A stretch of 64,000 nucleotides of DNA from Fimbriosthenelais zetlandica. Taxonomy: Eukaryota. Location of the stretch: NCBI GenBank assembly GCA_977030845.1, contig OZ365115.1, forward strand, positions 29,326,001 to 29,390,000. Direction: 5' to 3'. The notes beneath the pieces are model-generated. The model saw nothing but the letters and a program-made list of their open reading frames with translations, did not search any database and had not been told where the DNA came from. Below are positions 10,701 to 62,237 of the stretch, piece by piece. Both the position numbers and the translations under genes were made by a program. Positions within the stretch are counted from its first letter, which is position 1. Every line of letters starts with the position of its first letter.

Positions 10701-12004
10701 TAAACGGTTATGTTAAGGAGAATTTTAGTCTCCCACAGATTCCAGGTTGTGGACAATACAGGATAGCTGATTCCTCTTCGATTCCCCTTTGTAGGCGTAC
10801 ATTCTTTTTCAGAAACCATAAGAAAACAACTCTCTGTAATTAATAAGGTTGATTTAACCATTATACATTAAAGATCATAGGGGGATAAATGGAGCTAATC
10901 CATAGTATGCTGCCTTTTGTGGGAACATCATTTGACTTGTTCATCTACTAGTTTGTACTCGGCACACACTCTCCCACAACACTGAGTGTCAACCTTCTCT
11001 CACTCTCACCCTCTCTCAATGCATTCAGGGGTCGTAAGCCTATATTAGAAGCCTATGTGTGAGCATTGAAACATCTCATTCTATAATTTACTATTCCAAA
11101 CAGTTGCTGTCTCTCCATAAACTATATGAAGGTATCAACCTAAGTGTCAGGGTATAATTTACCGGGTATCGCATCGTGATTTTTGCGATACATGTTATCT
11201 GCATTCTTCTGGTGGCAAAAGGGAAATTTTTATGCAAAATCAGTTGATTGGATTCTGATTGCTATGCAAAGTCAACTTTTGTCAACAAAAATTGCTATGC
11301 ATGTTTGTCAAAGTAAATTATACCCTGAGTGTAATCTTAAATGGGTGAGTTTTCTCAATTAAAATCTTCAGCATCAATAGCAGATGATTTACTTTACATT
11401 ACAGTGGATGAACACTGTCAATCAATCATTGAATCAAATTGCTTGGATGAACAAACAAAGAATGTATATGCTCACAGATAGGATATAAGGGTATGATGTA
11501 GGCCTACCATACCACATAGGCTCATGGTAAACCCTATGAATCTCATTTCAATTATGCTGAATATAAGCAGACACAGCACCACATCTAAGCCTACTTCCCC
11601 CCCCCCCCCCGGGTTGGATCCCGAATTTTGTTTAAATAATGAAAAGATTAAGTAGAAAACGGGGACTAGACCTTGCGTCCAAAATTAATCCTGGATCCGC
11701 CCCTGCATGAGCCCAACTTTGCGTTCTCACCTAATGATTTTCAGGTCATTTACCACGCAAGAAACAAATTTCAGGCTAAATTCCAAAGCAAAATTAAATT
11801 GACCTGAAAATCTGGTTTTCAGATGAAAATGCAGACCCAGGGACGGTAGGAAGTGCCCCAAGCCCATCCGCGGATCCAGAAGCTAACCTTGGAGACAAAC
11901 AATCTCCATCTAACATGGATGATAAAGCTAAAGATCCATTATCCCCTCCCAAACAATCATCTCCATCTGCAGATAAAGCTAATGATGCATTGATATCCTC
12001 ATGA
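1744..12004 (+). CDS. Type I membrane protein with 10 sushi/CCP domains (RCA/complement-regulator-like architecture), about 707 aa
   Basis: 16 phase-consistent exons: 1744-1807 (signal peptide MLPTNLARLAVAFLYHVIVVS), 1901-1977, 2184-2286, 2474-2653, 3026-3205, 3453-3537, 3705-3808, 4634-4795, 5088-5255, 6001-6168, 6431-6619, 8066-8245, 8454-8538, 8712-8809, 10207-10305 (TM PLIVGMVFLALGVIGAAVCGGIYC-KKR), 11823-12004 (tail to TGA). Each module has the C-(F/Y)xCxxGY-C-W/F-C sushi pattern. Confidence 0.88.
3255..3425 (+). mobile_element. tRNA-derived SINE-like relic
   Basis: B-box-like GGTTCAATTCC near 3273, followed by a body (gtctcccactgactatggtg...) partly similar to gcctcccactggctgtagt near 40217, and an AT-rich tail. 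Confidence 0.35.
5291..5508. mobile_element. PIF/Harbinger (Tourist-like) MITE
   Basis: Imperfect TIRs TGGTGCGGACACACCAAA / TTTGGTGTGTTTGCACCA with TTA on both flanks (5288-5290, 5509-5511). Confidence 0.65.
5641..5960. repeat. Degenerate tandem repeat (unit about 70-80 bp) in a sushi-gene intron
   Basis: Recurring TGTTCCC(C/T)AATCAG...AGCTGTATA(C/T)AA...TGGG motif near 5642, 5711, 5788 and a partial copy near 5942. Confidence 0.6.
9404..9499. mobile_element. Short TIR element relic (hAT-like family)
   Basis: Ends CAGCTTTGCCACACA and TGTGTGGCAATCCTG are imperfectly inverted, with internal GAAAAGTCA(G/T)GGAA repeats. Similar GGGAACCCTG-type ends occur near 9940, 23890 and 36383. Confidence 0.45.
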
Positions 12005-16422: not shown

Positions 16423-23817
<7,395 letters not shown>

Positions 23818-26481
23818 CTTACCCCGCCTGGCTGCAAGGCGACAAGGCCTTGACTGAAACATTAAAATAAACATAGAAATTGAAAACCAGGGTTCCCAAG
23901 AGTAGACAATATGATCGGAATGGATACTCCATCTAAGTTCCTAGTATTTCATGGAGACCAAATTTCCTAATTTTTCTTTAAATAGTGATTACTTGGACCT
24001 ATTTCCATTTTGAAGTATCTTCTGACAATTAAACCTAAAACGAACCGTATTCGCTGTGAGATCACAATTACACGGAGAAAATAGTGAACAGAAATGAACG
24101 AAAGTTTAAAAATGTCGCCAGATGGAAATACCCGATTACACCTATTTAAATGCGGAGAAAGGATTTTCTGGAGGTCTTCCATGGATGAGCGGGAGGGGGT
24201 TTCCCTCCCCAGCCCCGCCCACTAAAAAGGGCCCGAGGTACTAAATTTAAAGCGAGAACGTAACTCCAGTGTGTTATGGTCTACAAAGGAAGACACCTGT
24301 CTGCTGTTCCCCGTCCTCGTTCCAGTTCATGCATCCTTGATTATCGCATTTTCTATTCTATCATAAGGGAAAGTGGGTCGAGACGCTAGAAATATAGGCC
24401 TACTGATGGAAGTCAATAACAACATTTTAGATCAAATATGAACTGATGAAATGGCCATGCAACACTGTTTTGCCGAAAAATTTCTCTCGAAATTATATTC
24501 ACTCATTTGTATTATATCCTGAAGATGTGTCTAAATTAGCCATAAAACCTAACCGAGTGATTAAAATGTCAACTTTTAAATTTAGTGTTTAACACAAATC
24601 ATCATCTGAAACACCTATGCACACCTGTTTCAAAACACACGTTACTTTCTTGATAATTTAAATAAAGACATGTTTGTAGTCTCTCAACAGATTTAACTTT
24701 TAAGGTGTTTTTATACAAACTTTACATTAGTTTCATGAGTGAAGATTTTATATATAATAGAACAAACACGTGCTTCTATGTTTATGAACCATGACCTTAA
24801 CATCAATGATCCTCCTCTCTGATTCTCTAATCTCGTTCACCTTTTCTCAGATTTATACTTGTTAACTCACGTATAACGTGACTGTCTCATCTCTAGACCA
24901 AAACACATTCCAAACCGAACCAAAGACAAACTTAAGAGTGACATCAACAAATTAAACTTGAACATTTTTACCTTACATGCCGCTTTGGCCATGGACGTGG
25001 CTACAACATGGTTCCCTCCTCGTATACTATTCCCTGAGAATTATTTCAACTTTTCCCAGTAAAAATCCCATGACAGAAACTCGTTGTATAAATCAGAAGT
25101 GTTCTGTACCAAAAACGGAAGTCATGTGTTCTGTGTGGGCAGATCTTATGGCTTGTGGGTTGAACTGTATTCTTGCATGAATGAAAAAAATGCCATGATA
25201 CATAACATTGTATTGTAATGAGTACCAGCCGGGCCATGAGGTATGACAAACAAGCCACTTCATTTAATCAAATCAGTTTTTGGGCCAAGTATATTTAGCA
25301 CCAAACGATAAGCATGCCTTGTGAATGGCTAAGATACTTGTGATATCTATCACTTCAATGAATGGATATATGATAATATTTGCTTATCACTACATGAACA
25401 CAGGCGGAACAAGATATTGAAAGGGGGGTGGGGTTAAAATCCAACGACGGAAAAGGGGTGGGCGGGGGGTATGTTTAGACTTGGGGTCCAAAGAAATTAC
25501 TATTTGAGCGAGAAAATAAACATATCGACGAAGCGCGGGGGGCCCTAAACCTATCCTGCTGATCCGCCACTGATGTATCTCAATCTTCCAATTATCTCAT
25601 TTTTGGATTTCAGAGTCAGAGGTAACAGGAAGAAATCCCATGGTACATCCGTGTTCGATTTAAATTCTAAGAGCATTTAAGTTACTACATAAGGGACAGG
25701 ACAACCAATGTCGGAAAGAATGCCCTCCAAAGCCACACTTCTGAAAGGTTCTTTAAAAAAAGTTTAATATACAGAACATGAGAGGACACAAAAGGAAGAA
25801 AGCTGCGCCCAAGGCAGTCCCTGGATCAGACCTGAAGATTCCAAGGAAGAGGAACTTAGTATTACTTAAAAAAACATTCAGCTCGGTTTCTCGCTATTGC
25901 CATATTTCCCAAACATTTGTTTGCAACCACTTGATATTATAGCAAGGCTCTGACTAACTTAAAACTTCCTTGTGTATACTTATTTTGCCAAGTGTTTCAC
26001 AATACTAGCAGACGTTCTAAACATCCGTGACAAAAATTTAAGTTTTTTAAAATGTATTTTCTTTGAGCTGTTCGTCGTATTTAGCCCACCGATCTCGCTT
26101 GACTTGGCACGATGAATGCTTATAGCATTCTATAGCTAAAAAGGTTTGTAAGTTTGAGTAAGGGATTGATAATAGTACTTCCGGGACAGAATCATAGGAT
26201 GAAGAAATTAAACAGTCAACATGTAATTGCATGCAATTACTGATATTTGATTTCCCTCCTCTCTTCTTTCTCCATCTATCTCTCTCCCTCCATTTCTTTC
26301 TTCCTCTAGGTTCTCTCACCTTGAAATTCTAGGGCCTTCCTACTGTCCTACCTCCTCTCTGCTTTCTCCATCTACCTCTCTCCCTCCCATTTCTTATTTC
26401 CTCCTCTCCTTGAAAATCTATGACCTTCCTACCTTCTCTCTTCTTTCTTCATCTAGCTCTCTCCCTCTAATTTCTCTCCCT

Positions 26482-29904: not shown

Positions 29905-32900
29905 ATGAACCTTGTCGTTAAACATCCCATCATTAGGACATTACAAAAATGGACAACATCTAACCAACGCATGCTTGGTCGACATATCCATCTCACCCGC
30001 CAAGTTCCCAATAAAGTTAATATCAAGTCTTGTACCTCACGGATATTAACGGTATCACTTGGTTCAGGAATTAGCTTAGGTATAGTGGGATTCTCAAGGT
30101 TATGGACAAATCGAGCAAGTTGTGAACGAAACCCAAACAAAGTTGGTCGTTTAATTGGTCTCCAAGATAGCAGCAAATGCCCAGAACCCCAATTTCAATG
30201 GAACGAATTATTGAAGTTACTTTTACCAGAAGTATGGTATCTGATTGGAGCAATCGTGGTATGTATTCCTTTCTTATTTTTTTTTTAAAGGGATTTCTTC
30301 TCATGATATTGCGGTATAATATGTTCTATCATAATTCATGATCATAAAAATTCATGCATTGAAAATGAAATTTGGATTTTTTTCTTAACTTCATTAAATC
30401 CTGTCTTTTGACGCACAGAATATTCCTAAAGGAAGTTATATATTATTTATAAGCAGCGCTGTCTATATGAATTTTATATGAAAACCATCGGGTGGGAGTA
30501 GCTGGTGGTGGGTTGGAAACACAGGGCAGGCCGTAGCTTTCACACCTGCCTCAGACGCTCTGCCTATTGTATAGGGATTTGGGGTGGCGTGGGGGGAGGG
30601 GCTTACTAGGTTGGACGTGGGGTGGGGGGTTGTTACTGATCGTAGCTGGTGGTGTGTTCGAGGTAAAGGGCAGGCCTTAGCTTTCACACTAGCAGAAGAC
30701 GCTCTGCTGTGTCAATTGGAGAGGAAACTTGTGGGGAAGGGGGGTCATGAAACAGTCAGAAACATTCATGAAATTTCAAGCGAGACTGGCAGAAATTCTG
30801 TGGGGACCCTGTATGAGGTTATATTATATATATTGTAAGTCAGGTGAATTTGTTTGTTTTTCAGACTGCTCTAGCTGTAGCGTTAGTAAATATTCAGATA
30901 CCACTAATGCTGGGAGATGTGGTGAATGTGGTCTCACGGTATAGCACAGAGACAGCTGGTAACTTTCTAAATGACATGAAGGAACCAGCCAGTAAACTAG
31001 TCATCATGTATGGTGTGCAGGTACGAAGAAACTAAATATTAAATTAGAAATAAAATAAAATATAACTATTATTAACATTCCTAGAAACTATTCTGACAAA
31101 CGTCTCTATCACTATGATAGGCTAATCTAAAATGTCTATTGGTTGATGCTGTAGCCTGTGTAAATTCTCGTAGAAAATATATAATTTACATTGATTATGT
31201 ACTAGAGATGATAGGCCTAGTTATTTATATTTTCAATATTTGACACTATTTTGCAGAGTGTCCTCACATTTGCTTATATCACTTGTCTATCTAACGCTGG
31301 AGAGAGGATGGCTGCTCGATTGAGAAAAAGCCTCTTCAAGAACATCATATCTCAAGACGTCAGTTTTTTCGATGAGCATAAAACTGGAGAAATTATAAAT
31401 AGGTGAAAACTAATATGTTTAAATACGGTAGTTTAATATAAATTTAATTGTCGAGAGTTTTACCGATGCCATAGCATCCCTTTTAATAACGAAAGCTGAC
31501 TTGTGCTAAACTATCTATATATATATATATATCAAAAAATGAATGGCAAAAATGTGCTTTTCATTATTTATTGTGGAAGTACTTTCTCGCTTTTAAGCGA
31601 TCATCACACCAGTTTCTGCTAAAGTATGAAATAAATTACATATATATACACATTGTAATATACAGGCTTTGACATATAGTCCATTTTTACATGTTAGAAA
31701 GCTACAATGGGGCGTCATAGCCCAGGAAGCTATAGTTACTGGCTTCGTTATTATTCCCTGTTTAGGCTTGGTTTTAGCTTTTCAATGAAATAATGTTCTT
31801 TGACAGTTAATAGGTCATCATTTGACGAATGGACTTGATAAAATGGCATGACTCTCATTTTAATTTCATGTTGAGAGGCACATGCAGCAAAATGGCGACT
31901 ACAATAAAGAATAGCATTTTGTGGGTTGTTTACGTGAGATCTGTGGTTATTCAGTCTAAATCTCAGAGCAGTTTTAGTCTTACCAATGTAATATTGTTTA
32001 CAACCTTGGCAAATTAGCACATATAATACATTGCTTGAGTTACAGTTAAGTGCTGACTGTACTTTGAAGTTGAAATTAGCTTTATGGAAATTAAATGATT
32101 CGCCTTCTATGATATATTTACATGCAAGGCATCTTGCTTGACCACATTTAGTAACACCTACAGTTTGGCAGGTGTTCTCAAACTTCGCCCTAGTTAGTAG
32201 TTTTTTAAGATTGGGGGCTTGCCTCTTGCCATTAATAAATGTTGTGTTGTTCATAATCTGTTTCATAATGTCATTGTTTTCCATGATGGTCATGTTGTCT
32301 TTTAGGGTTTTGAACATGTTACAGTGTTTTGGGTTCATTGTGTTGACAAAAGTTAAAGTGTTTGTATTTTCTTGAACCCTCTCAGTGTTTGGAGAACGTA
32401 ATTCCTCCATGCGAAGTGATTTAGCTTTTTCTATTCCTGCATCTATGAGGGTGGTTGGGTATTTCCGTTTGAGAAGGTATTGGTGGAGCTCCAATAGTCT
32501 TTCATCTCTGAGAGGAATATCACTTACTATGGTGCAGATGCGTCTTGCTAAGTTATATGGGATATTGGTTTTAGTGTGTCTGGGATGGCAAGAGAAGAAA
32601 TTAAGATATGATTTTGTGTCTGTAGGTTTGTAGTAGATATCTGTCACAATGTCATTGTCTTTTCGTTTGATTAGGATATCTAGAAAAGCTATTTCCTCCC
32701 TGTTGGTTTCCATGGTGAATTTAAGGTGTTCATTCAAATTGTTTAATATGTCTTTGAATTCTATTGCATTGCCCTGGGTGTCATCCCATATGATGAAGCA
32801 GTCATCTAAATACCGTTTGAAGTTGTTTTCTATATATGTACGGTATCTCTGGTTGTATTTGATTTCGACTTCTGAGTATAGTTTGGTCTCTAGGTAGCCT

Positions 32901-35900
32901 AAGACCAAAGTTGCCAGGCGAGGGATACATTTGGAGCCCATAGCCGCACCTAGAATTTGTTTGAAGTTGGAGTCTCCAAATTGGAATGTGTTATTGTCTA
33001 AGACTAGGTAAATGGCATCTAGTAGAAATTGTTTTGGGAAGCGAGCATGTAGATCTTGTGGATGTTTGTCAATCCAGTAGTTCATGGCTTCCAAGGCTAA
33101 TGTGTGGTCAATGTTGCTATATAGGTTGCAGACATCTAAAGTGATGAATGTTTCGTTGTCATTGATGTTATTTGGGAGATGGTTGAGGAAGTCCAGATCA
33201 TCCCTGACAAAGCTTTTTACATGCTTGATAAATGGTTCCAGAAGTAAGTCAATCAAGTTGCTTAGTCTGTGGGTGGGGCAGGAGGGACCAGCAACAATTG
33301 GTCTGAATTTGAGGTCTGTGGGGTTAGGAACCAGTATTGTGTTGGATCTCTGTTCTTTTATGGCGTCAATTATTGCTTTGCTTTTGTGTATTTTGGGTAA
33401 GCCATAAAAGTTGCTTGTTTTCACCTCAAATTTTAGTAAATAATTGACTTCTTCTTTAGTTAGGGTGTCATATTTGGAGGTGAGATCTTTGATTTTGTTC
33501 ATAATGTCTTTATCTAGATTTTTTGGGATTGTTTTATAGGTATTTATATCATTAAGTAGATCGAATATTTTGGATTTATAGTAGTTTTTTTCCATTACTA
33601 CCACTGCTGCTCCTTTATCTGCTTCCTTTATGATAGTGTTTTGATCCAGTTTAGTTTTTAGTGTTTTTAGTCCGTCAGATTCAGTTCTTGTGAGGTTGCT
33701 TCTAATGTTTTTGTTGCTTTTTTCAGCAAGGGGGTATTTAGAAATTATGTCAACATATGAGTCCAAGGCTGTATTGTGGCCCCTTTGAGGGGTGAATGTG
33801 CCTTTGTTCTTGACAAGGGAGTTTGTTTCCTCACGTTCTTACTTCCACAATAAATAATGAAAAGCACATTTTTGCCATTCATTTTTTGATATATCTCACT
33901 TCACTCAGAAATCTACTCATCATTTCTGTATATATATATATATATATATATATGATATCCTATTACATTTATTATTATATTTAGTCTGTTCCAGTATTGA
34001 GTTGGCAGTCTGTTATTAATTTTTTTTTCAGACTTACTACGGATATTCAGGATTTCAAGAGTTCGTTCAAACTGTGTATTTCTCAGGGTCTGAGGAGCAC
34101 AACTCAGGTGAGTCAGTGCATAATATTTTATAATTTATCATTTTTATAATTATCATTTACTAATGGGATAACGGTAGACATCTTAACTTTTATGAATAAT
34201 GTGATAATTATAAATGATTCCAGGTGATAGGATGTGCAGGATCTCTGCTGATTATTTCACCTAAGTTGACGTCCCTATTGTTTGTCGTGGTACCCTCCAT
34301 TATTCTGGTCGGTACAGGTATAGGCTCGTTATTAAGGAAGCTCAGTCGCCAGGCTCAAGCTCAGGTGAGGGCCTCATTATTTCTGACTTAAATCATTGTC
34401 AATCATACGGGGCTCAAAATAGCCGCATATGGAGCGCAGCTTGCGAGGGGAATTAAAAAAAATATGATTCGCAGTCTTTCGAAAATCAACGAAATTTTCA
34501 TATAATATTATAGGGAATATCTTTTAATATATTGATTACAGGTTGCCAAGGCTACGGCTGTAGCTGATGAAGCTGTTGGAAACGTTAGAACCGTCCGGGC
34601 TTTTGCTATGGAAACCAAAGAAATGGAGTAAGAATTTTACCTATCACGGTTCTTGGGGACAACATTTAGCACATAGATATAACTTTTGCATTGGAGGGTT
34701 CTGAGGGCATCCGATTTTAATGTTGATTCGCATCACCCGCCCGCCCTTAGAATAAAAAAGAATACCGTCCTCCCCATTTGGCCACCAGTGAAAAAAAGCT
34801 TCTAAAAACGCCAAAAGCATATACCGGTAGCCTTTTATGTCACTTTTTTCACTCGAAAAACTTGAAGACCAAAATCTTGAAGACCATCCTGCACTGACTC
34901 CCGGATCGAGGACAAGTAGGCAGGACATAAGTGGGTAAAGTTGCAAAAACAAAGTTGGCCCCCATTAGCCTACATGATTGTGCATTTTTTGAGTTGTTTA
35001 AGAGTTTTTTAATTTCTTCTTTTGTCCGCCCGCCCTCCCATCCATACCTTTGTCATGCTAATCATAGGTATTAGTATTTAATACGCATGATCTGAGAGAC
35101 AGGGACACAACAATAAGCTGTCAGCAGAGGGATATATAATTATAATATATTGAGAGAGCAGCATCACAGGAAACAGGTAGAGCATTTACTGTCATAGCTG
35201 TCAGACAGTCAGCTAATACAAAGCATTTACTTTGACATGTCTGTTCGGAAAGCTAATGACTCCTCATAACACTGCCATCTCATTGGCATTGTCCACCGTG
35301 ATATAAATATACTTTCAATCCAATTAACTTGGCAAAGTCATATTACAGTTACTTAGGCCTACCTGTTATTTCCTCCCTTCAATTAAATATCTACCCTCAT
35401 GCGTATAACGATGCTACCTATTCAGTTGAACAAATAATTCTTCTAATTACAGTTATTAATCAAGAATAGTTAATTGGAAATGGTCTTTTTACCGTTGTTT
35501 TGTCAAAATGGAATGTGAAAATTATGTTTACTGTTTTTGAATATACCGTACTGTATATAATTATGTGTATGCTACTAAATTAATTGCTTTATTCTTGCAG
35601 CTTGTATAATGAGGAGGTTGACCATTCAGCTAGAATGAACATGGTCCTTGGTTTGGGTATTGGTGCTTTCCAAGGCCTTTCAAATCTGGCATTGAATGGT
35701 AAGTATTCTCTTACTTAATATATTATTCAAATTTTAATTCATGACTTTGTACCCCTTTCCAAGGCATTTCACCCAGCATAATTTCTAATGAAAAGAAATA
35801 CAGAATAATACAGAATACAAAACGATTAAAAATTCATTTGTACTTGAATGTCTTATCAATATGTAAGAGATAAAGTAAGAGGGGGTCTGTGAGAGAAGGC

Positions 35901-38900
35901 GGGGGGGGGGGGGGGGGGGGTAACATTTGATAAAAGTGGAATCGTAATATTGATTTTGATTATTTTTGCAGGTATAGTATTAGGAACGTTGTATATGGGG
36001 GGATCACTAATGGCTGACGGGACGCTTCGTCCTGGTGACCTCATGTCCTTTATGGTGGCTACTCAAACAGTCCAGAGGTCAGTCCATTTGTTAGTAAATT
36101 CATCAATTGTTAAACACTTCAAAATCATTCACCGGTAGAGAATCAAGGAAAAAAATGAGTTTCACTTTTTAACGACGGGGAATACTGGAAAAATCAGGTA
36201 AAACTAAAGGAATTTCGACACTGACTCAGGAGGATAATCTTTCGGAGATTGATGCGTACAATCCCATGCCCGCCACTGGTGTTCAGAGTGCTTCATATGA
36301 CTAAAATATCTCTTAGAATTTAAGGGATTACGCAGGGAAATAATCAGGGAAAACCCGGTGAATTCTGTTTTCATGAAGTGCTGGGAACCCTGCTTAGAAT
36401 ATAAACAAGTAAAAACAAACGATTACTACAACGGGTTAAAGTATTTTTATTCCGAGATAATTAATACTGAGTTGTATTAAGATAGAAAGTAGCACATTTT
36501 CAATACTATAGATGAGGTAGTACTGGGTTTCCAAAACACAGCTCTTCTGTCATTTCTTATAGAACACGCACGGCTTGTCACAGGTTGACTGTATGGGGCT
36601 GAGGTCGGTGTCGATTGAATTCCATGTACACCTGAAGTTTTTTGTCTCTGTATTTTTTTCAGGTCGTTAGCTCAAATGTCCCTTCTCTTTGGTCAGGCTG
36701 TGAGGGGATTCAGTGCTGGTGCACGTGTATTTGAGGTAATTATTCTTGATTTCTCTTTTAAAAGTACTTAGTAACTACAGGAATTCATACAAACTATGAT
36801 ACATACTATGAACAGAAGTGTATTATATTTTCCTGTTGGAAATTCTGTCCTAAGATAATTGAACTTATAATCTTAAGCTCATAATTTTGATTTTCCAGTA
36901 CCTGGAATTACAACCCAGTATTGCCCTATCAGGGGGAGAAAAGGTGCCCTATCATACATTCCATGGTGGCGTGGAGTTCAATAAGGTTACATTCAATTAC
37001 CCCACCCGACCTGAACAGGTAAACCATGTGTTCTTCTTTTAATAAAATTTTATATGTTCCATGAAATCAACTTTTTGCTACAGTCTGATTAAATAACGAA
37101 CAAAAGATCAGGAAACCACTTTCTTTCTACTTTGCCTTGAGTGGAATGAAATTTTGTTTTCAAAACGTAGCGCTGAATGGGACTGTGCAACTCATTTCAT
37201 GAAAACAAATTTTATTTGGACTGAATTTCCACTACAGAGACCGTACTTGCGTTTTCAGGTGATTTTGAATGACTTCAGTCTCAAGCTTCCAGCTGGTCGC
37301 ATGGTTGCTCTGTGTGGATCATCAGGAGGTGGTGAGTTATGCTCAATTTTTTAGCATTTTTTTCTGATCAATTATGGACAACTATACAACATTTGAACTA
37401 TCAGACCTATACAACAAAAGCAGCATTCAAATATTTTTGTGGACTGACTATCAAAATATCTGGCTTGAAATCAAAATATTTTATGGTTGAACTTCAATAA
37501 AGGCTGGAGCGTTCACATTGATTGGTACAATGATAGAAAGACTTGAGTTACATCTGAGTGATCGGATTAACGCCAAACGAAAACTCTGGTTGATCCCTGC
37601 ATAAAAAACAATATTCAGGGTGGAATTCACCAGAACCAGTATACCGGTGAAAGGGCCCCATGAGGCAAATGGCTTACAATAATCTGGGTAGCAGAGACTA
37701 GCTGCAAAGGCATTGGCTGCAAGAAGGCCCCAGCTTACAAAGTAGCTGAGGGCCATAGCGCTGATCATGTTCGATATAGACTTGCTCCTGTTCAGGTGCC
37801 TCAGTGTCTTCTTCCGTTGGTTGACATGCGAACTTGTGCTGGGCACTTCCAGGTTATTACCATTACTTACTGTGGAAATAAATGTCTCTGATATCAGGGA
37901 TCTCACTAGATGCTTGATCCACAGGGCAGTTAGAATCTGAAAGATGCAAGTCATTAGAAGTAATCCAGTAGAGATGGATGTTCCCAGACGGAGATATGTT
38001 CGGCTGAAGTGCCCAGCTGCAAATTGACAACTGAGTTCATGAGGTGGGTTGGGGTCCATGGTGGCGAAGCCAGAGCCAGAGATGGCGCAACATGTGCAAA
38101 TTGATGCAAATATAGTGATAAACACATTTGCACGAGTCAGGTATATTTTAGTGCCAACCGGTGCCACTAATAACAAGAAATGCATGAGGGAGAGGAATGT
38201 TATAGCACTTAATGACGTCAAAGCTGAAAGTGTGGCCACAGATAAGGCAGCACAGCACAGAAAGTAGTTATATGGGTCCAAGTATATGATGAAAAGTCTC
38301 AACAGAAAGTAACATCCAAGTATCATGTGGCCGAAAGCTATGTAAGTGAAGAAATATTTAGTTGCAGCGTGGTGCACCTTCCAAAAGGGTAAAGCATGGA
38401 TGACTAGGCAGTTTCCTATGAGGAGGATCATGGCTACAGGAAGCTGAACAAATGCTAAAGCATAATTTGGAGAATGAGGTAGATTCTCTGCTGGAGAATT
38501 GGTGTAATTTTGGGAAGTCTCTGTGGACAAATTGGCATCCATGGTGTCCTAGAACGCTCCACTTTCAATATAAGATTGAGAAAAAAAATGATGACTTTTC
38601 CGCAATATGTTTTTCCTGTGTTTAAGCCTTTCCTTGGCAATGCTTGAACATTGAGGTGTTCAAAATTTTGAGTCTAAAGTTTTGAAGGAATTCTTTCTAA
38701 GAATTGGTTGTATCTTATTTGATAAGAAATAGTACTCGAGCATGTTTCTTAATGAAACATACCTTCTCTTGTTGGAGACTGTATGTGCAATGATTGTTCA
38801 ACTAGTAGTTAATGGCAATGAGCCCACGAGTGTTCAACAACAGACAGTGGTTGGCCTTCCATGCGATGCTCGCCACTGCTGCTTCACCGATGGCAGAACA

Positions 38901-52520: not shown

Positions 52521-54549
52521 GGTTCCTTTTTGAGATTTGAGACAAAAGTCATGTTGGGTTAAATGTGTGATATAGCAGATAGATACTCAGGGAAATACTC
52601 AATTTCAGTGGCATAGTTAGTAGAAATGAATAGGGGATTGGAAGAACTGGCAAATACTAATCATATCATATCTAATCTATCTATCATATAACCTATCAAT
52701 ATTCATTTTTTTGTGGGCTATAGGCAGCCCTGTTGATTAAATCTTTGAAAGATAAAAGCCTAGAAATGATTATGATAAGAAAATCTTTAAATGGAAGACA
52801 CAACATACCTGGGTGTAGAGATATCTACGTTAACAGAGTGTTGTTATGTAGCTTTTCCAGCTTCTAGTTCCTGAACTGAATCGCGTGACTGAGGTTCCAT
52901 CTCCCAATCTGACTCGGCAGACTCCCGTTCTCCTCTATATTACCAACCTTCTGCATTATATATAGCACCTTCAACCTGGCCCAATGAAGTAACAGGTGAT
53001 TCCGCTGCACTAAGATAATAATTATTAACATTCATCTCATTGATACTTTCCACAGTTGCATGCGATGTTTGCCATCACACATAGGCCTACTCCCCACAGT
53101 CCCCAAAATGCTTAACCTATTCACACCCTATCCATGATGTATAATCAAGCAACATAATATACTAATTATGGGATATGCTTATTTTCGAAAATGGCATGGA
53201 CAATAATAGTAGTATCTTTGGCAGGTAATTTCTCTTCTATTTCCCTGCTTAAATAGGAATGGCACTTTAAGCGATTTATAGACATGGCGATTTATAGACA
53301 TACATAATGATAGTTGCTCCTCTTTTTTTTGAGCTCTCCCTTTCAATTGGTTGCAATTCAGGTTATGCTTCATTCAAAGTGACCGGGGTGGGTGGTGTAG
53401 AGCTAGAAGGTCGTCAGAGCTGAACACGCAACCTGATAAATAATGGACACTCTGGGGCCTGTTTCAGAACAACCATTAGCAATGCTAAGTTTATGGGAAA
53501 TCTTTGCAGGCCCATGGTTACCAGGTTCTAGACTGTATAGCGTTCAGCTTAGTTATCTTTTACAGATGTCCTAGAATGCCAGAGATTGCCAGGAGATGAA
53601 GAATTTTGTAAAGACACATTTTTGTTCGTTTTAGGAAAACTTCCAATTTATATTAAATTGATTGGTCATTTCTGTATTCCATGGATCTCGCTTCACCCCA
53701 GCTATGTCCACAAACAATTACAGATGGCAGCACCATAGATCTGATTATTTAGACTTGATAGAATATCTTCAATAGTAAATTAATTATACTATAATTATTC
53801 CATTAAATAACTATGGCACAGGACATATTTTTGGTTATGAAAGAAGGATTTATTTATCAGAAAAGCAGGTTTTATTAATAGTTCATTATCAACCATAGCA
53901 TACAATAAGTTTCAAAAATATAACTTCACGCTATTTGAGTAGGCCTACCAATCCTTAATTATAACGAGGACAAGGCAGTTCTGGGCGTTGAAATTGATGT
54001 ATACAAATACATGTAGGTACACAACAATACACAGCAGAGACGGGAAATAAGTATTATTGGATGAAGTACAGGTAATAATGCAGTCAACAATTTGGTAGAG
54101 TTTGCTTAAACATTCACTTATGTACATTGTATAGCAGGTTATTTTGTAATTTGTCTAACGTTGAATCACATCAGCATAATAATATTGTATATATTAATGT
54201 GCACGAAAATGGACGGATTATTGTGCAACTGCCATACAAATCGGATTATAGTGGAACAATACTGCTTAAATTGAAATGTATAGCAGTTGATATTCAGTAT
54301 TAATACCACAGATATAATAAAAATAACGATTAAATATCCAAATCTTTACTAAAATCAGAGAGCAAACTACTTCAGTCCTCCAAAATATGACCATATTATT
54401 AATCATAATTTAAAGCATGTCTTTATGAAAAATGTGCTTTAAAATCAAGTCTATAGATTAATGTGAGAATCTTTGCTCATCCTGGGATTCCTTCAAGCGA
54501 TAGCTGTATAATTGCTCAAAACCTTGAAATGACTTCCATTACTTTTAAG

Positions 54550-57500
54550 TTAACACTCAACAGCACCCACTGACTTTCCTTTGCCGTCTGCTTGTTCAAC
54601 ATTAGATTTGGCTGCCACTAGCACAGCCTCCATTCGCTCCTTCTTCCACGCCTTTATTTCATCTTTAAGATCTATGTCTATTGGTAAAGCAGAGTCTATA
54701 ATAGTTTCTCCAGTTGTCGGGGAAACAACGCTCGTCTCCATCCATTCTATGATGGCTTTTCTTTCATATGATCTGCCGTCACTACATTTTACTGGCTGTC
54801 GCATCACGTCTTTGGTGATGGGACAGAGGAACTCCATGGGAGGTGGTGACGTCAGCGAACTTTGTGCTCCTGATGACGTCACTGTACGATTGCGCTGAGT
54901 ACTGGCACTCTTACTACGAATACTGATTGGTTGTTTCTCTGGTGCTGGCTCTTTTCTCACTGCTTTTGCACTTGCAATATTGCGAGATCCAACATTTTTA
55001 CTCTTGGGCTTCTTACTATCTTTTTGTGTGGGATTCTGCTGTGGCTTTTTAGCAGCACTGGCAAGAATAGATGATGTTTGCACTGCTTCAATGGGCGCCA
55101 TTTTCCTCACGCCACTGCCATTATCCGTTGATTCCCGCTTGGTTTCGAATTGGATAGCGCCTCCTTTCTGGTTGTACATCGATGCTGCATAAGGCACTGA
55201 AGTGAGGACTAGGGCTGGATCAGGTCCTTCTCCTTTCTTTTTGTTAGGTTTCAATTTGTATAGATGAGCCAGACCATCAGGCCCACCTATTTTGGATTGC
55301 TCCTGGCCTGGTGGTGTCTTCTTTGGTATGGTTGAGTCGAGTGGTACATTTTTCGGTGGTGGGTATGACTTGGGATTGTTTATGATGACCACAGAGTCAT
55401 TGACGACTGGCTCATCATTGTCTTCTTTCTCTGGTTTGGACTCTATCATTTCTGCCGGTGGCGTCTCCCTCAAGTCACTCCATGACCAATCGAACATCGA
55501 CTCTTTTGGAACGTCCATTTCTGCAAGCCAGAAATGAGATGGTGGTGAGATAAATGAAAATAAATGAGATAATAATATGATAGAGATAAAGTTGGAGTGT
55601 AGTAGATGATACCGATACATTTGCGACCAACTAAGAGTTTAATCTGAATTACCGTTCTTCTGATTGTGACTGCATTCAAAGTCAGGTGTTGGGGGTGGTT
55701 TCTCATCCTCATAATCCATCTTATACTGGTCCTCCTTGTTTTGGACTGGATTATCTCTTAGTATTGACCGATCCACCATCAGTTCTGGATCAACAGTCCA
55801 TATGTTCTCCTTATAAAGAAACCAGAAATTAGACATAGATAATGTAATTTGTCCACATATATATATATATGAGCCTGTAGGATATGCCATAGGCCTACAG
55901 CTAAAAATAGTACCGAAGTAAATGTATACACACCGGATTCTTGTTTTCTGTGTCCAGTGTTTCAGGATTTTCAGTATAGGGACTGATCCTTGACTTTGAT
56001 CCAAAGATGGAGAGGATTTTCACCTTATCTTCCCTGTAAACGATATGAAACATCATTATTCAATATAATTATTATCCCAAATGGCACTTCCTGTGCATCT
56101 GTCCATTCAACTTTCCATTCAGAAAAATTTCGTCTTTGCACTATAATATTAGATTTACTTACGATTTGTTCTTTTTATGTTTGAACCAACAGAGTAAGAT
56201 GGTGATAAAGATGACTATGATAATGATGAGTAGAATGATATATATCACCCATGTTGAGTCGTGTCTCTTCTCTCCTGGACCACTTCGATGGGCTGTGAAA
56301 ATACAATATAATTATAAAGATTTTTTTCGAGTGTTTATAAATATGTGCAAAACACTATGATTGAATAAAAGTTGGGAGATGAGTAAAGCGAAACAAAACC
56401 GCACCCCCATCGCTACAAAAAAATCTCATTTCAACTTACATAATGATAAAAATGACTTACCACTAGGATCTTTAGTAGCCCGGTAGTTGAGGAGGAAGTA
56501 GCGTATACGGGTGCTGCTACCTGCTGACAGAGACAGTAATATCTGACTCACTCCAGCTCGTATCTCCAAGGCTGACGTGTCCCGGCGTTTACCTGCTCAA
56601 TAAATGGTGGTAAAATCCCATTAAAACTAAATAGGGCCTGCAAAATGAGGCGAGAAAGTGCCACTTCCGGTAACCTTTGTAGCATAGTGGGGATTAGCTA
56701 AATAGCCCAATCTGACGAACCTATGTGATTGTTGGCCACAAAAGACCCTGCTTGCAAAAAGGGATGGAGGGGTTTAAATGAATCGGTTATGCTTAGTTTA
56801 GATTAAGCCTTGCATTGTTTAAATGTATGGGCCGAATCGACGCCAGGACAGCGGAAATAGGCTTAGTGTTTTTTCCTCGAAGACGTGTCTTTCGAAAAGA
56901 ATATTAGCATGTACCTAAGTGGCTAATATTCCCTTTGAAACATTCCTATGATGCATAAATAAGTTATGCTGACAATGTGGAAATTGACGGACTTACGGTT
57001 AGCTGATCCACTCAACTCGTTGAGCAACTTTCCATGACTGTCGTTCTCATAAATTAAAAGTACATCAGATTCCCCTAGTTGGATCTCTGCAAGACAGAAA
57101 AGACTTTAGATCAATTAATGCAATTACAAATTTGGGGCAACGCAGAACAAAAACATGGCCCACTTGAAGCTATGTTGTGGCTTTGGCATAAAGGCAGAAC
57201 TTTGAATGTAAAGTTCTCCATCCTCACCTTTGATTGTTAACTGGACGTTTTGTCCTGTAGGGACCTGCAGTGTCCAGTTACATTTGATGTAGTCCGGGTA
57301 TGAGCTTGGGTAGCCGGGTGACCGTACCTCGCCCTCCATCTTACCATATCTGTACGTTCTCTCATAGTTAGGGCAACCTGTAACAAACACAATGCCAACA
57401 TTCTTAACTTACAATAGCAGTTTTGTTTGTGGAAATGTTACTTGTAACTAATAACTTTAATTTTTTACCATAATTCGAAACTACATACATGTATATATAA

Positions 57501-60500
57501 ATCTAAATAACAATCCCACAGCACTGCAAAAAACACAACAAAACATCGGATAACAATTGGCTCAGCTTAGCTCATACGTCAAACATAAAGCATACCTTTG
57601 GTAATTGCATTACTATGGAAACGAAATATATGAAGAGCATTTGGGTCGTAAATTTAATGTCAAACATGCATTAATATTAATGGCGGGAATTGCACACTTT
57701 CGACAAGAACATGCATGCATTTTACATATTTTTCAGACATTAGTCACGCTACTGTGAATACACTGCATTGATCCCCTATATGCTATATAGCGCGTTCAAT
57801 TGAATACAGTAGTTTATGAATTATTTTCTCATGTATAAACATGATGTATTATGAAAATATTATGAGCGTTACTGCATAGAAAAAAAGAAAAGAACATTGG
57901 TAATGTTTAGAACTTTTGAGCCATAGGCTCGACCACTGTTCTGTATGCCTTTTTGCATACCAAATTTCTAGCCAAAAAAGAGCCATTTTAGTCAAGTCCT
58001 TCACATAGTGGCTGAATTGGAGTTTTTAATTAACAAATAGACGAAAATCGATTGGTCTACAATTGAGATAATGTCCTACACGTAGTGAACTGCCAAATGA
58101 GGCTGAAATTAATTATTAAATCATATCATATTTCATGTGATCTGAGTCAACTGGTTAATATTTTATCGTTGATCCACTTTCAAAGACGCACGTCTGCCTT
58201 CATAATAGCTATCACTCAACCGTGAATTTCACTTGCATATATTTGTCATGAATGATCAGGGCCACATTAATGATTTAATAACGTAATTCCCATATTGGTG
58301 TCAGTCCTATATGAAGACGTGTATTTAAAGTTCTGAAAGATACTCTCAGTTTTAATACCGTTAAAGTATGTCAGAGTATGTTTGTACATTTTTGTGCTGT
58401 ATATCTTTCGAGGACAGTGCAGTGGGCATGATAAGTTGTTTATACTTTATAAAAATTATGTCTTATAAAAGTTATGTCTTCATGGGATGCTAGCATTAAA
58501 ATATTGGAGATGTGCCAATATAATCTCATGAATTAAGTACTTTGTCGTGTGTGTTTGCCAAAGTTCACCTTGAAAAGTCCAGGAAAGATTTCGAATGCTT
58601 TCAGTTGGCTTTTCAGGATTGTTAATGTGTTAATTTGGTGACAGATTGAAATCAAGTGTTAAGAATCAACTCTGCCCTCTGTAGGCTACAAGACCACATG
58701 TTGAACACGTCAACATTAGATGTTGAACACATCAACATTAGGCTAATAATGTCAAAAATAAAATTAATAGCCCCCATACTGTGATAAGACAGAATATCGG
58801 TCACTGTCTGCAGACTACCGATACATGTATTATATAAATATCATCGCCATCTGAGACTTTGATGCAAAGTGCTGAACTAAAGCTTAAAGAACAGGTAAGA
58901 CGGCCTTCTTTAGCTTCACCTGCTGATATGTGTTATCACGCAATGAACAGGTAAGCAATGGTGTAAGCTTTACTTATACTAACTGCTTGTGTTACTTGGC
59001 AATCATTCCTCAATATGTCACAGTTCCATATCTGGAAATGATTCAGCATCTCTAAATATTTGCTTATTTTAATTAGCAAATATTAGCAATAATATTAAAA
59101 AACATTACGCACAGACTATAGGAAGAGGAAACAAAGATATTAGGACAGACAATATCTAGACTACCACACTGTGTTACCTATTTGCTGGCTTGTAAATGAA
59201 GCTTTAGTACTTGGTCTTAGGGTTAGACTGCTGGTCGTTGAGCCTTCAGTACTTGATTCTTTCTTCAGTCTACCCTGACCTTTTGAAGTATCTGGGGTAT
59301 AATGGTTTGTTGTGCTTTCCTCTTCTGATCGATAAGTCAGAGTAGTTGATAATTTGTCTGTATTTAAATGAAAAGGAAATGTTGTTTCAATGTTCCTTGC
59401 TCCTGTGGGGTGTGTATCAGAAGTGAACTGTTCCGCTTCACTTCCGGTTTCTTCAGCCGAAATATGTTGTCCTTCAGAAATCGACGTTTGGGCAATACCT
59501 ACCGTGGTAGTCTGAACATGTTGCATTGTACTCTCAGTATAATATCCAGAAATAGGATCAGGTGAACTGTTAACCCTTACTTTACCTGTATTACCTGTTT
59601 CAAACACACTAGAAAAATTTAACTCACTTGTTGGCCGTGCAGTGTTAACCCAAGTGGAACTTGAGGTTGTTGTCACATTTATGTGTGTAGTTTCAGGTAA
59701 TGAACCTGGAAAAGATGTCTCATTTTTACTTTCATTATTAGCAGTAATGAGACTTTCAGTTGTCATAGGATGTTCAGTGGTTGAGTCAAGCATTTCAGAG
59801 GTTACAGATCCAGTGGTGACAGCACCACCGGTGGCCCTAGTAGTGACAGCACCGGTGGCCCCAGTGCTCACAGTTGTGGTGACATCAGTGCTCGAGTTTG
59901 CCGTCACATTATGCATGTGTGTCAGAGAAGATGAAGAAGCAATTTCAGTATTTTGTGTGTGATCTGAAAATCTCAAATCTGTGGTAGAATCAACACTCTC
60001 ACTCGAAGAAGGCACACCAAAAGTGGAAAGAGATGAAAGTTCATGCTCTTGTGAATCAGAAAAATTATTGCGAAGCCTCACATCATCTGCAAGGGTAGAT
60101 CCAGAGTCTGAGGTGACGTAGAAGGTGCTTGTGACAGAAGAAGCTTGCCTTGTGCTGGAGTCCATGTTAATTCGGTGGTCAAGTGATTTAAAGTCTTTCT
60201 CACTCGTACCGGGGCTTCTTACGCCATATTCTAGGTCCTCACCAAGGTCTGACCCAGATATGGTAGAGCTATCAGAAGGCCAAGGTGATTGAGTTACCTT
60301 GGAGGCTGACTGACCAGCTTCCTGTGAGCTGGCTGCAGCCTTAGTAGGTTCTGACCTTGGTAGGGACTCCATTGCATGATAGTGCTTTGTAGTTGTTAAC
60401 AGCTTTGATGCACCTATATTGCTTTCACTGACATCAGACCCAGGTATTAAGGGACTGTCTATTTTCATTCGACCCATATTTAAGCTGCTAGAACTAGTGG

Positions 60501-62237
60501 CACTATAAGGAATATCACCTCCTAACTTAGCTAACAAAGCAGCTTTACTTTCTTTTGTTATTTTATAATCACGCGAAGGACTTTCATGATCATCGACAAT
60601 GCGCCAGGAATGATCAATCAATGAATACTGAGAATCAACTATATTAAAATCATCCAAAGTCATGCTGGGGATTTTCAGTTGGGGAAGGTCCAACTGTTTG
60701 AAGCCTGTGCTTGTGGAGGAAGCACCAGTATTTAAGCGAGTATCAGGGTTCAAGCGTCTAGAAGAAGGAGCAGTGTTAGGAAGAGGAAGAGAAGATGAAG
60801 ATGCTAGGAGAGAAATGATTGAACTAGAGCTAACAAGGCTACCTGTAGTACTGGAGAATACAGACGATCCTGGCCTCGTCCGAGGCAGTGGTGGATCCAG
60901 CGGTGGGAGATTGTCATAGTTAATGACAGGATAAAGTGGAACATCATGAGGTTTGCCCTGGCCCGGTGCTGGCCAGGTTGTCGGTGGGTGTAGTGGTTGA
61001 TCAGCCGGACCAGTAGGTAGTTGTGGCTGTTCAGATGCCGGCAGATCAGCCGGAGGTGGCCTGCTGGACGGTTGCTGGACCGGAGGATCGTTGGTTGGAG
61101 CACGACTGGTTGACCCTATGGTAGGGTCGTGGATGCAATGGATGACCAGTGAGTTGTTGTAGCAGGATGGACCATCTGGTTCATGACGATGGACAATCCA
61201 CCAGGAATGCCCCTCACACTGGCTCAGACATCTTTCCTGGCCTGAAGATGATACAAAAAAAGGATATTATTTTCATTGCTGCAAAGTTATCCTGCCATTT
61301 CGATACATTTCTTGCAGATCATGAACTCTCATATGTGCTGGGCATATATGGATTAAAGGTGGCCCATTTATAAAACTATAGTATGTGGTAAACCGTCTAA
61401 ATTGAACCAACCTCCAATGGCTAGGAGACCCTGTCACCCACGACACACTCAGCCCACCCAGCTTCACCACTACAAACCTTTATGCCTCAGCACCATCATG
61501 CCCTAGAGGCTGAAGTTGCCCTCTGTGCCTATTGAGTTTCTATTGTCACTTACCTCGACACGAAGCCTCTGTTTTGTAGATATTATCATTGAGATAGACT
61601 CCGTGATATGGCTCTCCTGGCACTATGCCAGCATGGTGGTCATACCCTAACCGTCTACAGATGTGATTAGCTATGTTCGTGGACATAGAAACCAAGCAGA
61701 CCCTGTATAACCGTCCATCCCTCTTGATCATGACATGACCAAGGCCCATACTGGTGGTAGAGATGAGTCTGAGCTCACCATCCTGAGGACAACAACCTGC
61801 AAACAGAAAACACTTGATCATTTGGGAGTCCCCTACAATAATGGCTGAAGCTATTTTGAAGACGTGGCTGTAATCCTTCATGTCATATTAGCACGATTCG
61901 ATTTAATTGAGACTCAAAACAATGGTAGCTCCACTGGGATTCTCTTGCATTGCGAGTGTGGCGATTTTGTTGCGGATATGCCTTGTGGCTGACTTTTCCA
62001 TGGCCTCATCTGACACTCCAATCACAAACAGGCGTCCATCTCAAGCCCCTGCTAGTGCTGTTATAGGCATATACTTGCGGCAAAATTAAGAAGTTGGAAG
62101 TAAAATGATCTGATATTAGGCCTACCTCTGGATGGAATCCGGCAGCCTTGGTCCAGGCCCTCAATGGTTGAGAACTGGAGAGCAATGATGACAAGTATGG
62201 CTGCTGACCCCACTCCTGCTTGACGAAGTGAAGACAT
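54550..62237 (-). CDS. Putative type I receptor with cytoplasmic U-box: signal peptide-SRCR-Pro/Ser/Thr mucin stalk-CUB-TM-U-box, about 1382 aa
   Basis: 10 phase-consistent exons: 62237-62126 (signal peptide), 61796-61554 and the start of 61241-59178 (SRCR: ELRL..VC..ICRRLGY..SCRGQERCLSQC..SC..VIHC, then the stalk), 57377-57228, 57086-56997 and 56592-56461 (CUB: GEVRSPGYPSSY..CNWTLQVPTGQNVQLTI..DVLLIY..FLLNYRA), 56292-56163 (TM WVIYIILLIIIIVIFITILLCWF-KHKK), 56033-55934, 55809-55653, 55520-54550 (U-box PMEFLCPITKDVMRQPV..SDGRSYERKAI.EW..SPTTGE). Total 4149 nt with no internal stop. Confidence 0.8.

Follow-up and report, generated by a model that had tools for sequence, protein, structure and literature searches.

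A single gene most probably lies on the minus strand of the 64,000-nucleotide stretch of Fimbriosthenelais zetlandica DNA analysed here (contig OZ365115.1, positions 29,326,001 to 29,390,000; the window), between window positions 62237 and 54550, and its sequence predicts a receptor-type U-box E3 ubiquitin ligase that is conserved in a second species. The deduced product, a type I membrane protein of 1382 amino acids (aa), would carry, in order, a signal peptide, one divergent SRCR domain, a long Ser/Thr-rich stalk, a CUB domain, one transmembrane (TM) helix, a cytoplasmic tail and a C-terminal U-box for which ligase activity is predicted. The DNA is of animal type and has a GC content of ~38%. 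Comparisons below refer mainly to the second species (the source of the ORF call P0003; 31 kb of a 3.35-Mb ENA contig examined, loci L001 and L005), in which the modules were placed by tblastn of the window gene model.

Structure of the gene

In the list of open reading frames (ORFs) the minus strand of this locus is represented by separate pieces of 356 aa (U-box), 88 aa (start of the CUB domain), 530 aa and 111 aa (SRCR match), the 530-aa Ser/Thr-rich ORF being part of a 701-codon open frame. An initial annotation, made from the letters of the window, had proposed that the U-box, CUB, mucin and SRCR fragments are joined through nine GT-AG introns. When the exon pieces were joined by hand from the sequence and the joined frame was verified by script, ten minus-strand exons (62237..54550) and nine GT-AG introns yielded exactly the 4149 nucleotides (nt) claimed, encoding 1382 aa with no internal stop. 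All nine acceptors have good pyrimidine-rich (polypyrimidine) tracts, both unused frames of each of exons 2-9 hold stops, leaving a single open frame in each, and the intron phases are, in order, 1,1,1,1,1,1,2,0,1. No paralogous copy of the gene was found elsewhere within the window, and an Rfam scan gave no match.

Exon 1 (62126..62237; this and all following exon coordinates are on the minus strand) starts with the ATG at 62237, encodes the putative signal peptide (MSSLRQAGVGSAAILVIIALQFSTIEG...) and ends in a phase-1 donor, as does an equivalent exon in the second species. Exon 2 (61554..61796) covers the SRCR domain except for its C-terminal third and aligns with an exon of the second species. 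Exon 3 (59178..61241), at 2064 nt a single open frame, supplies the end of the domain (CRGQERCLSQCEGHSWW...C) and continues through a Pro-rich segment into the Ser/Thr-rich, mucin-like stalk. The CUB domain is spread over three exons: its first part, with the motif GYPSSYP...C.W, on exon 4 (57228..57377); its middle on exon 5 (56997..57086), which is bounded on both sides by phase-1 introns and is 53% identical to its counterpart in the second species; and its end on exon 6 (56461..56592), which opens with the residues RKRR. For exon 6 an alternative acceptor at an internal AG (56520), which would reduce the coding sequence to 4077 nt, was ruled out by the orthologous exon of the second species (11494-11640), which supports the acceptor at 56592; the longer exon supplies the missing CUB strands, and its counterpart gives a weak match to positions 80-110 of the CUB profile.

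The linking exon 7 (56163..56292) has the coordinates that the initial annotation assigned to it and encodes the segment of highest hydropathy in the protein, the predicted TM helix (WVIYIILLIIIIVIFITILLCWF), followed by a basic stop-transfer sequence, KHKKNK; it ends in a phase-2 donor, and the corresponding exon of the second species has the same phases. The juxtamembrane tail, including FGSKSRISPY, is encoded by exon 8 (55934..56033), entered in phase 2 and left in phase 0 in both species, the colinear exon of the second species reading LFGSKTRILPY. Exon 9 (55653..55809) encodes an acidic part of the tail with the motifs ENIW, KMDYEDE and PPPTPDF, and it too has a colinear counterpart (YWAW...HMDENEELPPPPTEF) with the same phases. 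Exon 10 (54550..55520) encodes a Lys-rich, disordered stretch of tail with the motifs PLD.TIPKKTPPG.E and SVPYAASMY, the U-box (about aa 1286-1354; 54634..54840, minus strand) and a C-terminal helix, and closes with a TAA stop at 54552-54550. A pattern search located two AATAAA signals some 680-700 nt past this stop (53849..53876, minus strand), which probably mark the 3' end of the mRNA.

Comparative evidence for one gene

The orthologue survey for which the initial annotation had called recovered the same SRCR-stalk-CUB-TM-U-box gene in the second species, exon by exon. On one strand, and colinear with the window gene, are found the SRCR domain, the SRCR end, a stalk exon of 1012 aa, the three CUB exons, the TM exon, exons 8 and 9 and the U-box; the resulting model has eleven exons, with a signal-peptide exon first, and its frame is uninterrupted from the SRCR domain to the stop after the U-box, over 1753 aa. 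Each of the nine introns of the window gene recurs there, in position as well as in phase, and the second species adds one phase-0 intron within the SRCR domain; its acceptors are all AG and its donors GT, except one that reads GCAAGT. Identity between the two proteins amounts to 34% in the SRCR domain, 30% in the stalk (aligned columns), 37% in the CUB domain, 34% in the TM exon, 36% in exon 8, 28% in exon 9, 33% in the tail portion of exon 10 and 44% in the U-box. Exons 8 and 9, situated between the TM and U-box exons, are kept as coding sequence in the second species. Because exon order and intron phases recur in a species only about 30% identical, the correspondence is more than chance would be expected to produce.

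Further relatives extend the comparison at the 3' end of the gene. An exhaustive profile search with exon 10 returned three close relatives, at 56, 41 and 36% identity, all of them single-exon ORF calls of about 350 aa from raw contigs, whose N-termini represent intron read-through and whose initial "M" is a GTG or TTG within the intron. A third species, known from the Logan contigs of a single run, has exon 10 at 56% and exon 3 at 37% identity, with the same acceptor phase; the acceptor of exon 10 is in phase 1 in three species besides that of the window. The conserved part of exon 10 begins right at the acceptor in all four species compared, and an ATG stands there in one of the four, that of the window; in a sister species the first in-frame Met of exon 10 sits inside an invariant tail motif, SVPYAASMY.

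Several observations weigh against a single, full-length receptor-ligase. The related contigs are genomic, their exons being flanked by intron sequence, and we infer one continuous transcript for the window gene from the comparison of species. (Two contigs of the Logan set, L003 and L004, stop 18 nt past an AATAAA and were entertained as transcripts; they were rejected, since a third contig of the same run, L006, carries exon 3 flanked by introns, and the run is most likely DNA.) Searches of the protein collections, limited in length, turned up no annotated full-length family member, the nearest entries being single-exon ORF calls. With exon 2 scanned alone, the SRCR match (PF00530) stays just under the Pfam cut-off of 26.1, at 22.7-24.4 bits (E 1e-4 to 4e-5), the domain being split by an intron. 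Finally, two features of the sequence around intron 9, an ATG and a polyadenylation-like signal, each suggest another reading of the locus.

The first of these concerns the start of exon 10. In the window, an ATG forms the second codon of this exon, which would permit a separate U-box product, and in database gene calls the U-box exon figures as a ~350-aa protein; the locus could accordingly comprise two adjacent genes, one for an SRCR-stalk-CUB-TM receptor with a short tail and another for a soluble U-box protein, with a promoter in intron 9 or upstream, and the in-frame junction would then be an artefact of the gene model. However, the database proteins are the prokaryote-style calls described above, which begin at an intronic GTG or TTG, and three other species lack the ATG, though the residues just after the acceptor are conserved there. 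The phases of exons 7-9 and of the exon 10 acceptor are kept in the second species despite the divergence of its protein, the joined frame is open there too, and neither exon 8 nor exon 9, whose protein sequence is conserved, begins with a start codon. Because exon 10 has no conserved start codon, a separate U-box gene, and hence a division of the locus into two genes, appears decidedly unlikely.

The second feature is an ATTAAA in intron 9 (55638..55643, minus strand). Reading through the exon 9 donor leads, after four codons, to a stop that this signal overlaps (...KN-GNSD*), and the single gene might, speculatively, make two products: the full-length receptor-ligase and a shorter receptor, ending at the ATTAAA and devoid of the U-box, that would act as a decoy or non-degrading form. 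In the second species, however, the ATTAAA is missing, and read-through, while it also stops soon, meets no poly(A) signal. We regard a second product of this kind as rather doubtful, and one gene encoding the complete receptor-ligase as the better account of the locus.

Some additional features of the related loci were recorded. The GCAAGT donor of the second species lies at 11049/11050 of the reverse complement of L005, where exon 5 is apparently followed by a GC-AG intron (G|GCAAGT) in place of the GT intron of the window gene. In the same species a LINE ORF of 950 aa, with endonuclease and reverse transcriptase (L001 2324-5176, minus strand), sits in opposite orientation in intron 6, which separates the TM exon from the last CUB exon and is stretched by the insertion to ~5 kb. 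At the loci of P0009 and P0152 (ENA) the U-box exon is preceded on the same strand, at a distance of ~5-8 kb, by an ORF of 879 aa for which Pfam gives no match, with small ORFs in between, a layout that suggests the same stalk-plus-U-box plan in a further species. P0009 represents a more distant member of the family, with a last exon of 491 aa that contains four acidic repeats of the form D.IW / E.LW.

The U-box

The U-box (PF04564) scores 50.8 bits against a cut-off of 21.4 (E 1.9e-13) and extends over profile positions 2-71 of 73; the orthologue in the second species scores 63.5 bits. When compared with solved structures in the PDB, this piece matches U-boxes exclusively, namely LubX, AtPUB14 (1t1h), PUB12 (7xed) and UBE4B, and is closest to Legionella LubX and the plant PUBs. 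It has only two Cys residues (1292 and 1305), and so lacks the zinc-binding Cys/His set of a RING domain; nor was any PA or RING domain detected by Pfam in any exon. In CHIP, UBE4B and the PUBs, the Ile of the CPI motif and the Pro of SP.T make contact with the E2. In the window protein both are kept (I1294 and P1327), together with the core G..YER..I..W, and across the alignment of six family sequences the Ile, the Pro and a core of the form G..YE..A...W are invariant. By these criteria the domain resembles active U-boxes.

It might nonetheless serve for binding alone, as an inactive pseudo-ligase or E2 trap; the protein would then be a scavenger or adhesion receptor of the ordinary kind. Most members of the family have Asp in place of the usual Asn of the L.PN motif (PIDIDL), which would fit such a loss of function. 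An AlphaFold2 model of exon 10, built with the six-sequence alignment, is likewise of limited help to the ligase interpretation: mean pLDDT is 48, order is predicted only at the U-box and in the long helix after it, where pLDDT ranges from 56 to 88, a moderate confidence, and the remainder of the exon is disordered. Yet the match covers nearly the entire Pfam profile, the U-box is the best conserved module of the protein with respect to the second species, and the residues whose role in E2 contact is established for CHIP and UBE4B show no exception in the six sequences. A pseudo-ligase therefore seems quite improbable to us, and we retain a catalytically competent U-box as the prediction.

Membrane topology and cytoplasmic tail

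The hydropathy profile has its maximum, 3.65 over 19 aa, at aa 946, and the surrounding segment (aa ~944-966) is the only strong hydrophobic segment in the interior of the protein. At the other end, exon 1 provides a hydrophobic h-region and an N-terminus resembling a signal peptide. Hydropathy and charge together predict a type I, single-pass topology, with a signal peptide, one TM helix and KHKKNK as a positive-inside flank, and the tail is placed in the cytosol because this basic stretch directly follows the TM helix.

The predicted cytoplasmic part comprises 414 aa, of which 48 are Lys, and about 320 aa of Lys-rich, disordered tail precede the U-box. Within this otherwise disordered region several short motifs are conserved. 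SVPYAA[S/G]MY..G..IQ is invariant in the six aligned sequences, PLD.T.PKKTPPG.E is found in four of the six, and FGSK.RI.PY, located just past the membrane, is common to the window protein and that of the second species, the only two compared at this position. The tail also has repeated acidic-Trp motifs (ENIW, DWSW), with up to four D.IW copies in P0009.

The ectodomain

Further comparisons concern the split, near-threshold SRCR domain: the best PDB matches of the exon 2 piece are all SRCR proteins (CD163, at 2e-5, CD5L and DMBT1), the corresponding piece in the second species scores 18.1 bits with the Pfam profile, and in three species the C-terminal part of the domain (C.G.E.CL..CEGH.W ... 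C) is visible where exon 3 begins.

A stalk of ~650 aa had been proposed for the protein in the initial annotation; we measure 651 aa, rich in Ser, Thr and Pro by composition (S 17.8%, T 13.8%, together 31.6%; P 8.0%). This segment is probably O-glycosylated, and the ectodomain as a whole contains 11 N-x-S/T sites. Two islands, INYDNLPP (aa 225) and AALLAKLG...GRMKI (aa 352-379), are kept in three species (the window, the second species and the source of P0153), the second with the consensus LLAKLG...GRMK[IV]; the stalk is thus not purely of low complexity.

The membrane-proximal CUB domain (PF00431) is recognized in exon 4 at 35.2 bits against a cut-off of 21.4 (E 1.7e-8), over profile positions 5-43, and its PDB matches include cubilin (the best, at 1.8e-15), C1s, PCPE, MASP and the neuropilins. 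In the window protein it has the first disulfide pair only (Cys 808 and Cys 839). The residues RKRR at aa 887-890 (56581-56592, minus strand) are the sole occurrence of R-x-[KR]-R in the protein and fall in a loop of the CUB domain, at the junction of exons 5 and 6; the second species has RRKRR there, giving the site in both species in which the exon could be read. The sequence looks like a proprotein-convertase site of the furin type, marking possible processing of the ectodomain, and cleavage at this point would split the CUB fold into two noncovalently associated halves beneath the mucin-like stalk. Such a predicted cleaved CUB domain under a stalk would recall the S1 site of Notch and the SEA and GAIN modules.

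Database and literature searches

Word-index searches, limited in length, matched only the exons of the sister species. Among the matches of a representative search were long U-box proteins (P0022, P0048, P0146 and others), which were set aside as not related by layout, having neither SRCR nor CUB. A scan of JGI metagenomes returned generic U-box loci only, in none of which the tail motif occurred, and the ESM Atlas returned only generic U-box clusters.

A full-text literature search for transmembrane or membrane-anchored U-box proteins found none. The combination of U-box (or UBOX) with SRCR led to one relevant match, a study by Neubauer et al. (2016, PeerJ; PMC5119243), in which DMBT-like cnidarian proteins are described that combine CUB domains with MAM, fibronectin, UBOX and SRCRs. 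Supplementary file 2 of that study lists a predicted SRCR-CUB-TM-U-box protein of Acropora digitifera (aug_v2a.03894.t2) and a transcriptome contig of A. millepora (c000424) with the architecture "...SRCRX3-WSC-CUBX2-UBOX" and a length of 1948 aa. Since this contig ends in CUBX2-UBOX, transcripts of the fused type exist in animals. The initial annotation had stated that it knew of no described protein with this architecture; that statement is too strong, the corals having been catalogued with it in 2016 (PMC5119243). The single type I SRCR-stalk-CUB-TM-U-box protein of the original interpretation is supported, being conserved in a second species, and the novelty of its domain order is reduced. 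The core architecture is one already catalogued, once from a transcriptome, without functional analysis, and the window gene is a conserved, bilaterian-type version of it.

As judged from the listed order of modules, which is the only basis of the comparison, the proteins of A. digitifera and A. millepora have the same core succession (SRCR ... CUB, TM, C-terminal U-box) as the window protein. They include MAM, LDLa and WSC modules and several copies of SRCR or CUB, with no long stalk listed, whereas the window protein has one SRCR, a mucin-like stalk of some 650 aa and one CUB.

Relation to known receptors and ligases

To our knowledge, the characterised membrane-anchored E3 ligases of animals that possess an extracellular domain are all of the RING type, and those U-box ligases of animals that have been characterised are soluble proteins. 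Among the former, the PA-TM-RING ligases (RNF43/ZNRF3, GRAIL/RNF128, RNF13 and Goliath) ubiquitinate neighbouring receptors and drive their endocytosis. They share with the window protein a type I orientation with a single TM helix, a binding domain outside the cell and, on the cytoplasmic side, a domain that recruits, or is predicted to recruit, E2 enzymes; the window protein, on the other hand, has no PA domain, a metal-free U-box instead of RING-H2, a far longer tail and an unrelated ectodomain. The likeness is one of functional analogy only, in which the window protein would be the counterpart of these ligases with a U-box.

A different parallel is offered by plants, where the pairs SRK-ARC1 and FLS2-PUB12/13 likewise couple a surface receptor to a U-box ligase. 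There the two are separate proteins linked through ARM repeats and phosphorylation, whereas the window gene would place both functions on one chain, with neither a kinase nor ARM repeats. With regard to the ectodomain, DMBT1, CUZD1 and proteins of the neuropilin type resemble the window protein in presenting SRCR or CUB domains on a glycosylated stretch, and CDCP1 is a TM protein with CUB-like domains whose ectodomain is cut by proteases; a catalytic domain on the cytoplasmic side is lacking in all of them. The predicted RKRR site lies within the CUB fold, and not between domains, in contrast to proteins of the CDCP1 type.

Proposed mechanism and implications

A reasonable model is that of a surface sensor that ubiquitinates itself or its partners. 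The ectodomain, made up of SRCR and CUB binding modules, would bind an extracellular ligand or a neighbouring membrane protein; the resulting clustering of receptors could bring their U-boxes together; each U-box would recruit a charged E2 and attach ubiquitin either to the Lys-rich tail of the receptor itself or to proteins that dock on the conserved motifs of the tail; and ubiquitination would lead to endocytosis with lysosomal delivery and degradation, or else to signalling. In a broader and more tentative proposal, which we think less probable than not but worth stating, these proteins may belong to an ancient and conserved family of receptor-type U-box ligases in animals, which would be the first equivalent of RNF43/ZNRF3 to use a U-box. 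Such a family would occur in spiralian-like invertebrates, might share ancestry with the coral proteins and would have disappeared from vertebrates and the model ecdysozoans; in it a furin-cut CUB domain beneath the long mucin stalk might serve as a shedding or force-sensitive switch on the cytoplasmic ligase.

Odd combinations of domains are common in invertebrate genomes, and the present one is already listed for corals. If the U-box is active, however, the gene would indicate that this fold, too, has come to serve a cell-surface receptor as its output module, and it would unite on one chain the receptor-plus-PUB logic known from plant immunity. For invertebrate immunology and ubiquitin biology it would offer a directly testable candidate for the direct linkage of pattern-recognition modules (SRCR and CUB) to ubiquitination without adaptors, and the conserved tail motifs and the RKRR site are convenient handles for mutagenesis.

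Other features of the window

Four other features were observed outside this locus. An intact ORF of 671 aa (31751-33766, minus strand), with matches to reverse transcriptase (E 2e-5) and, at its C-terminus, to GIY-YIG (E 2e-4), both just under the Pfam cut-offs, is a candidate Penelope-like retroelement that was possibly active recently. An intronless, GPCR-like ORF of 353 aa (37481-38542, minus strand) has seven hydrophobic segments; it has no Pfam match, and a word-index search found no homologue at E<=1e-10, and it may represent an orphan, lineage-specific receptor. Near the beginning of the window, a sushi (CCP) repeat exon (2452-2859, plus strand; E 8e-7) is part of a different gene. At about 21484-23874 on the minus strand lie exons for the catalytic subunit of a class I PI3-kinase, with p85-binding (E 2e-12) and Ras-binding (E 2e-13) domains; the gene probably continues further down that strand.

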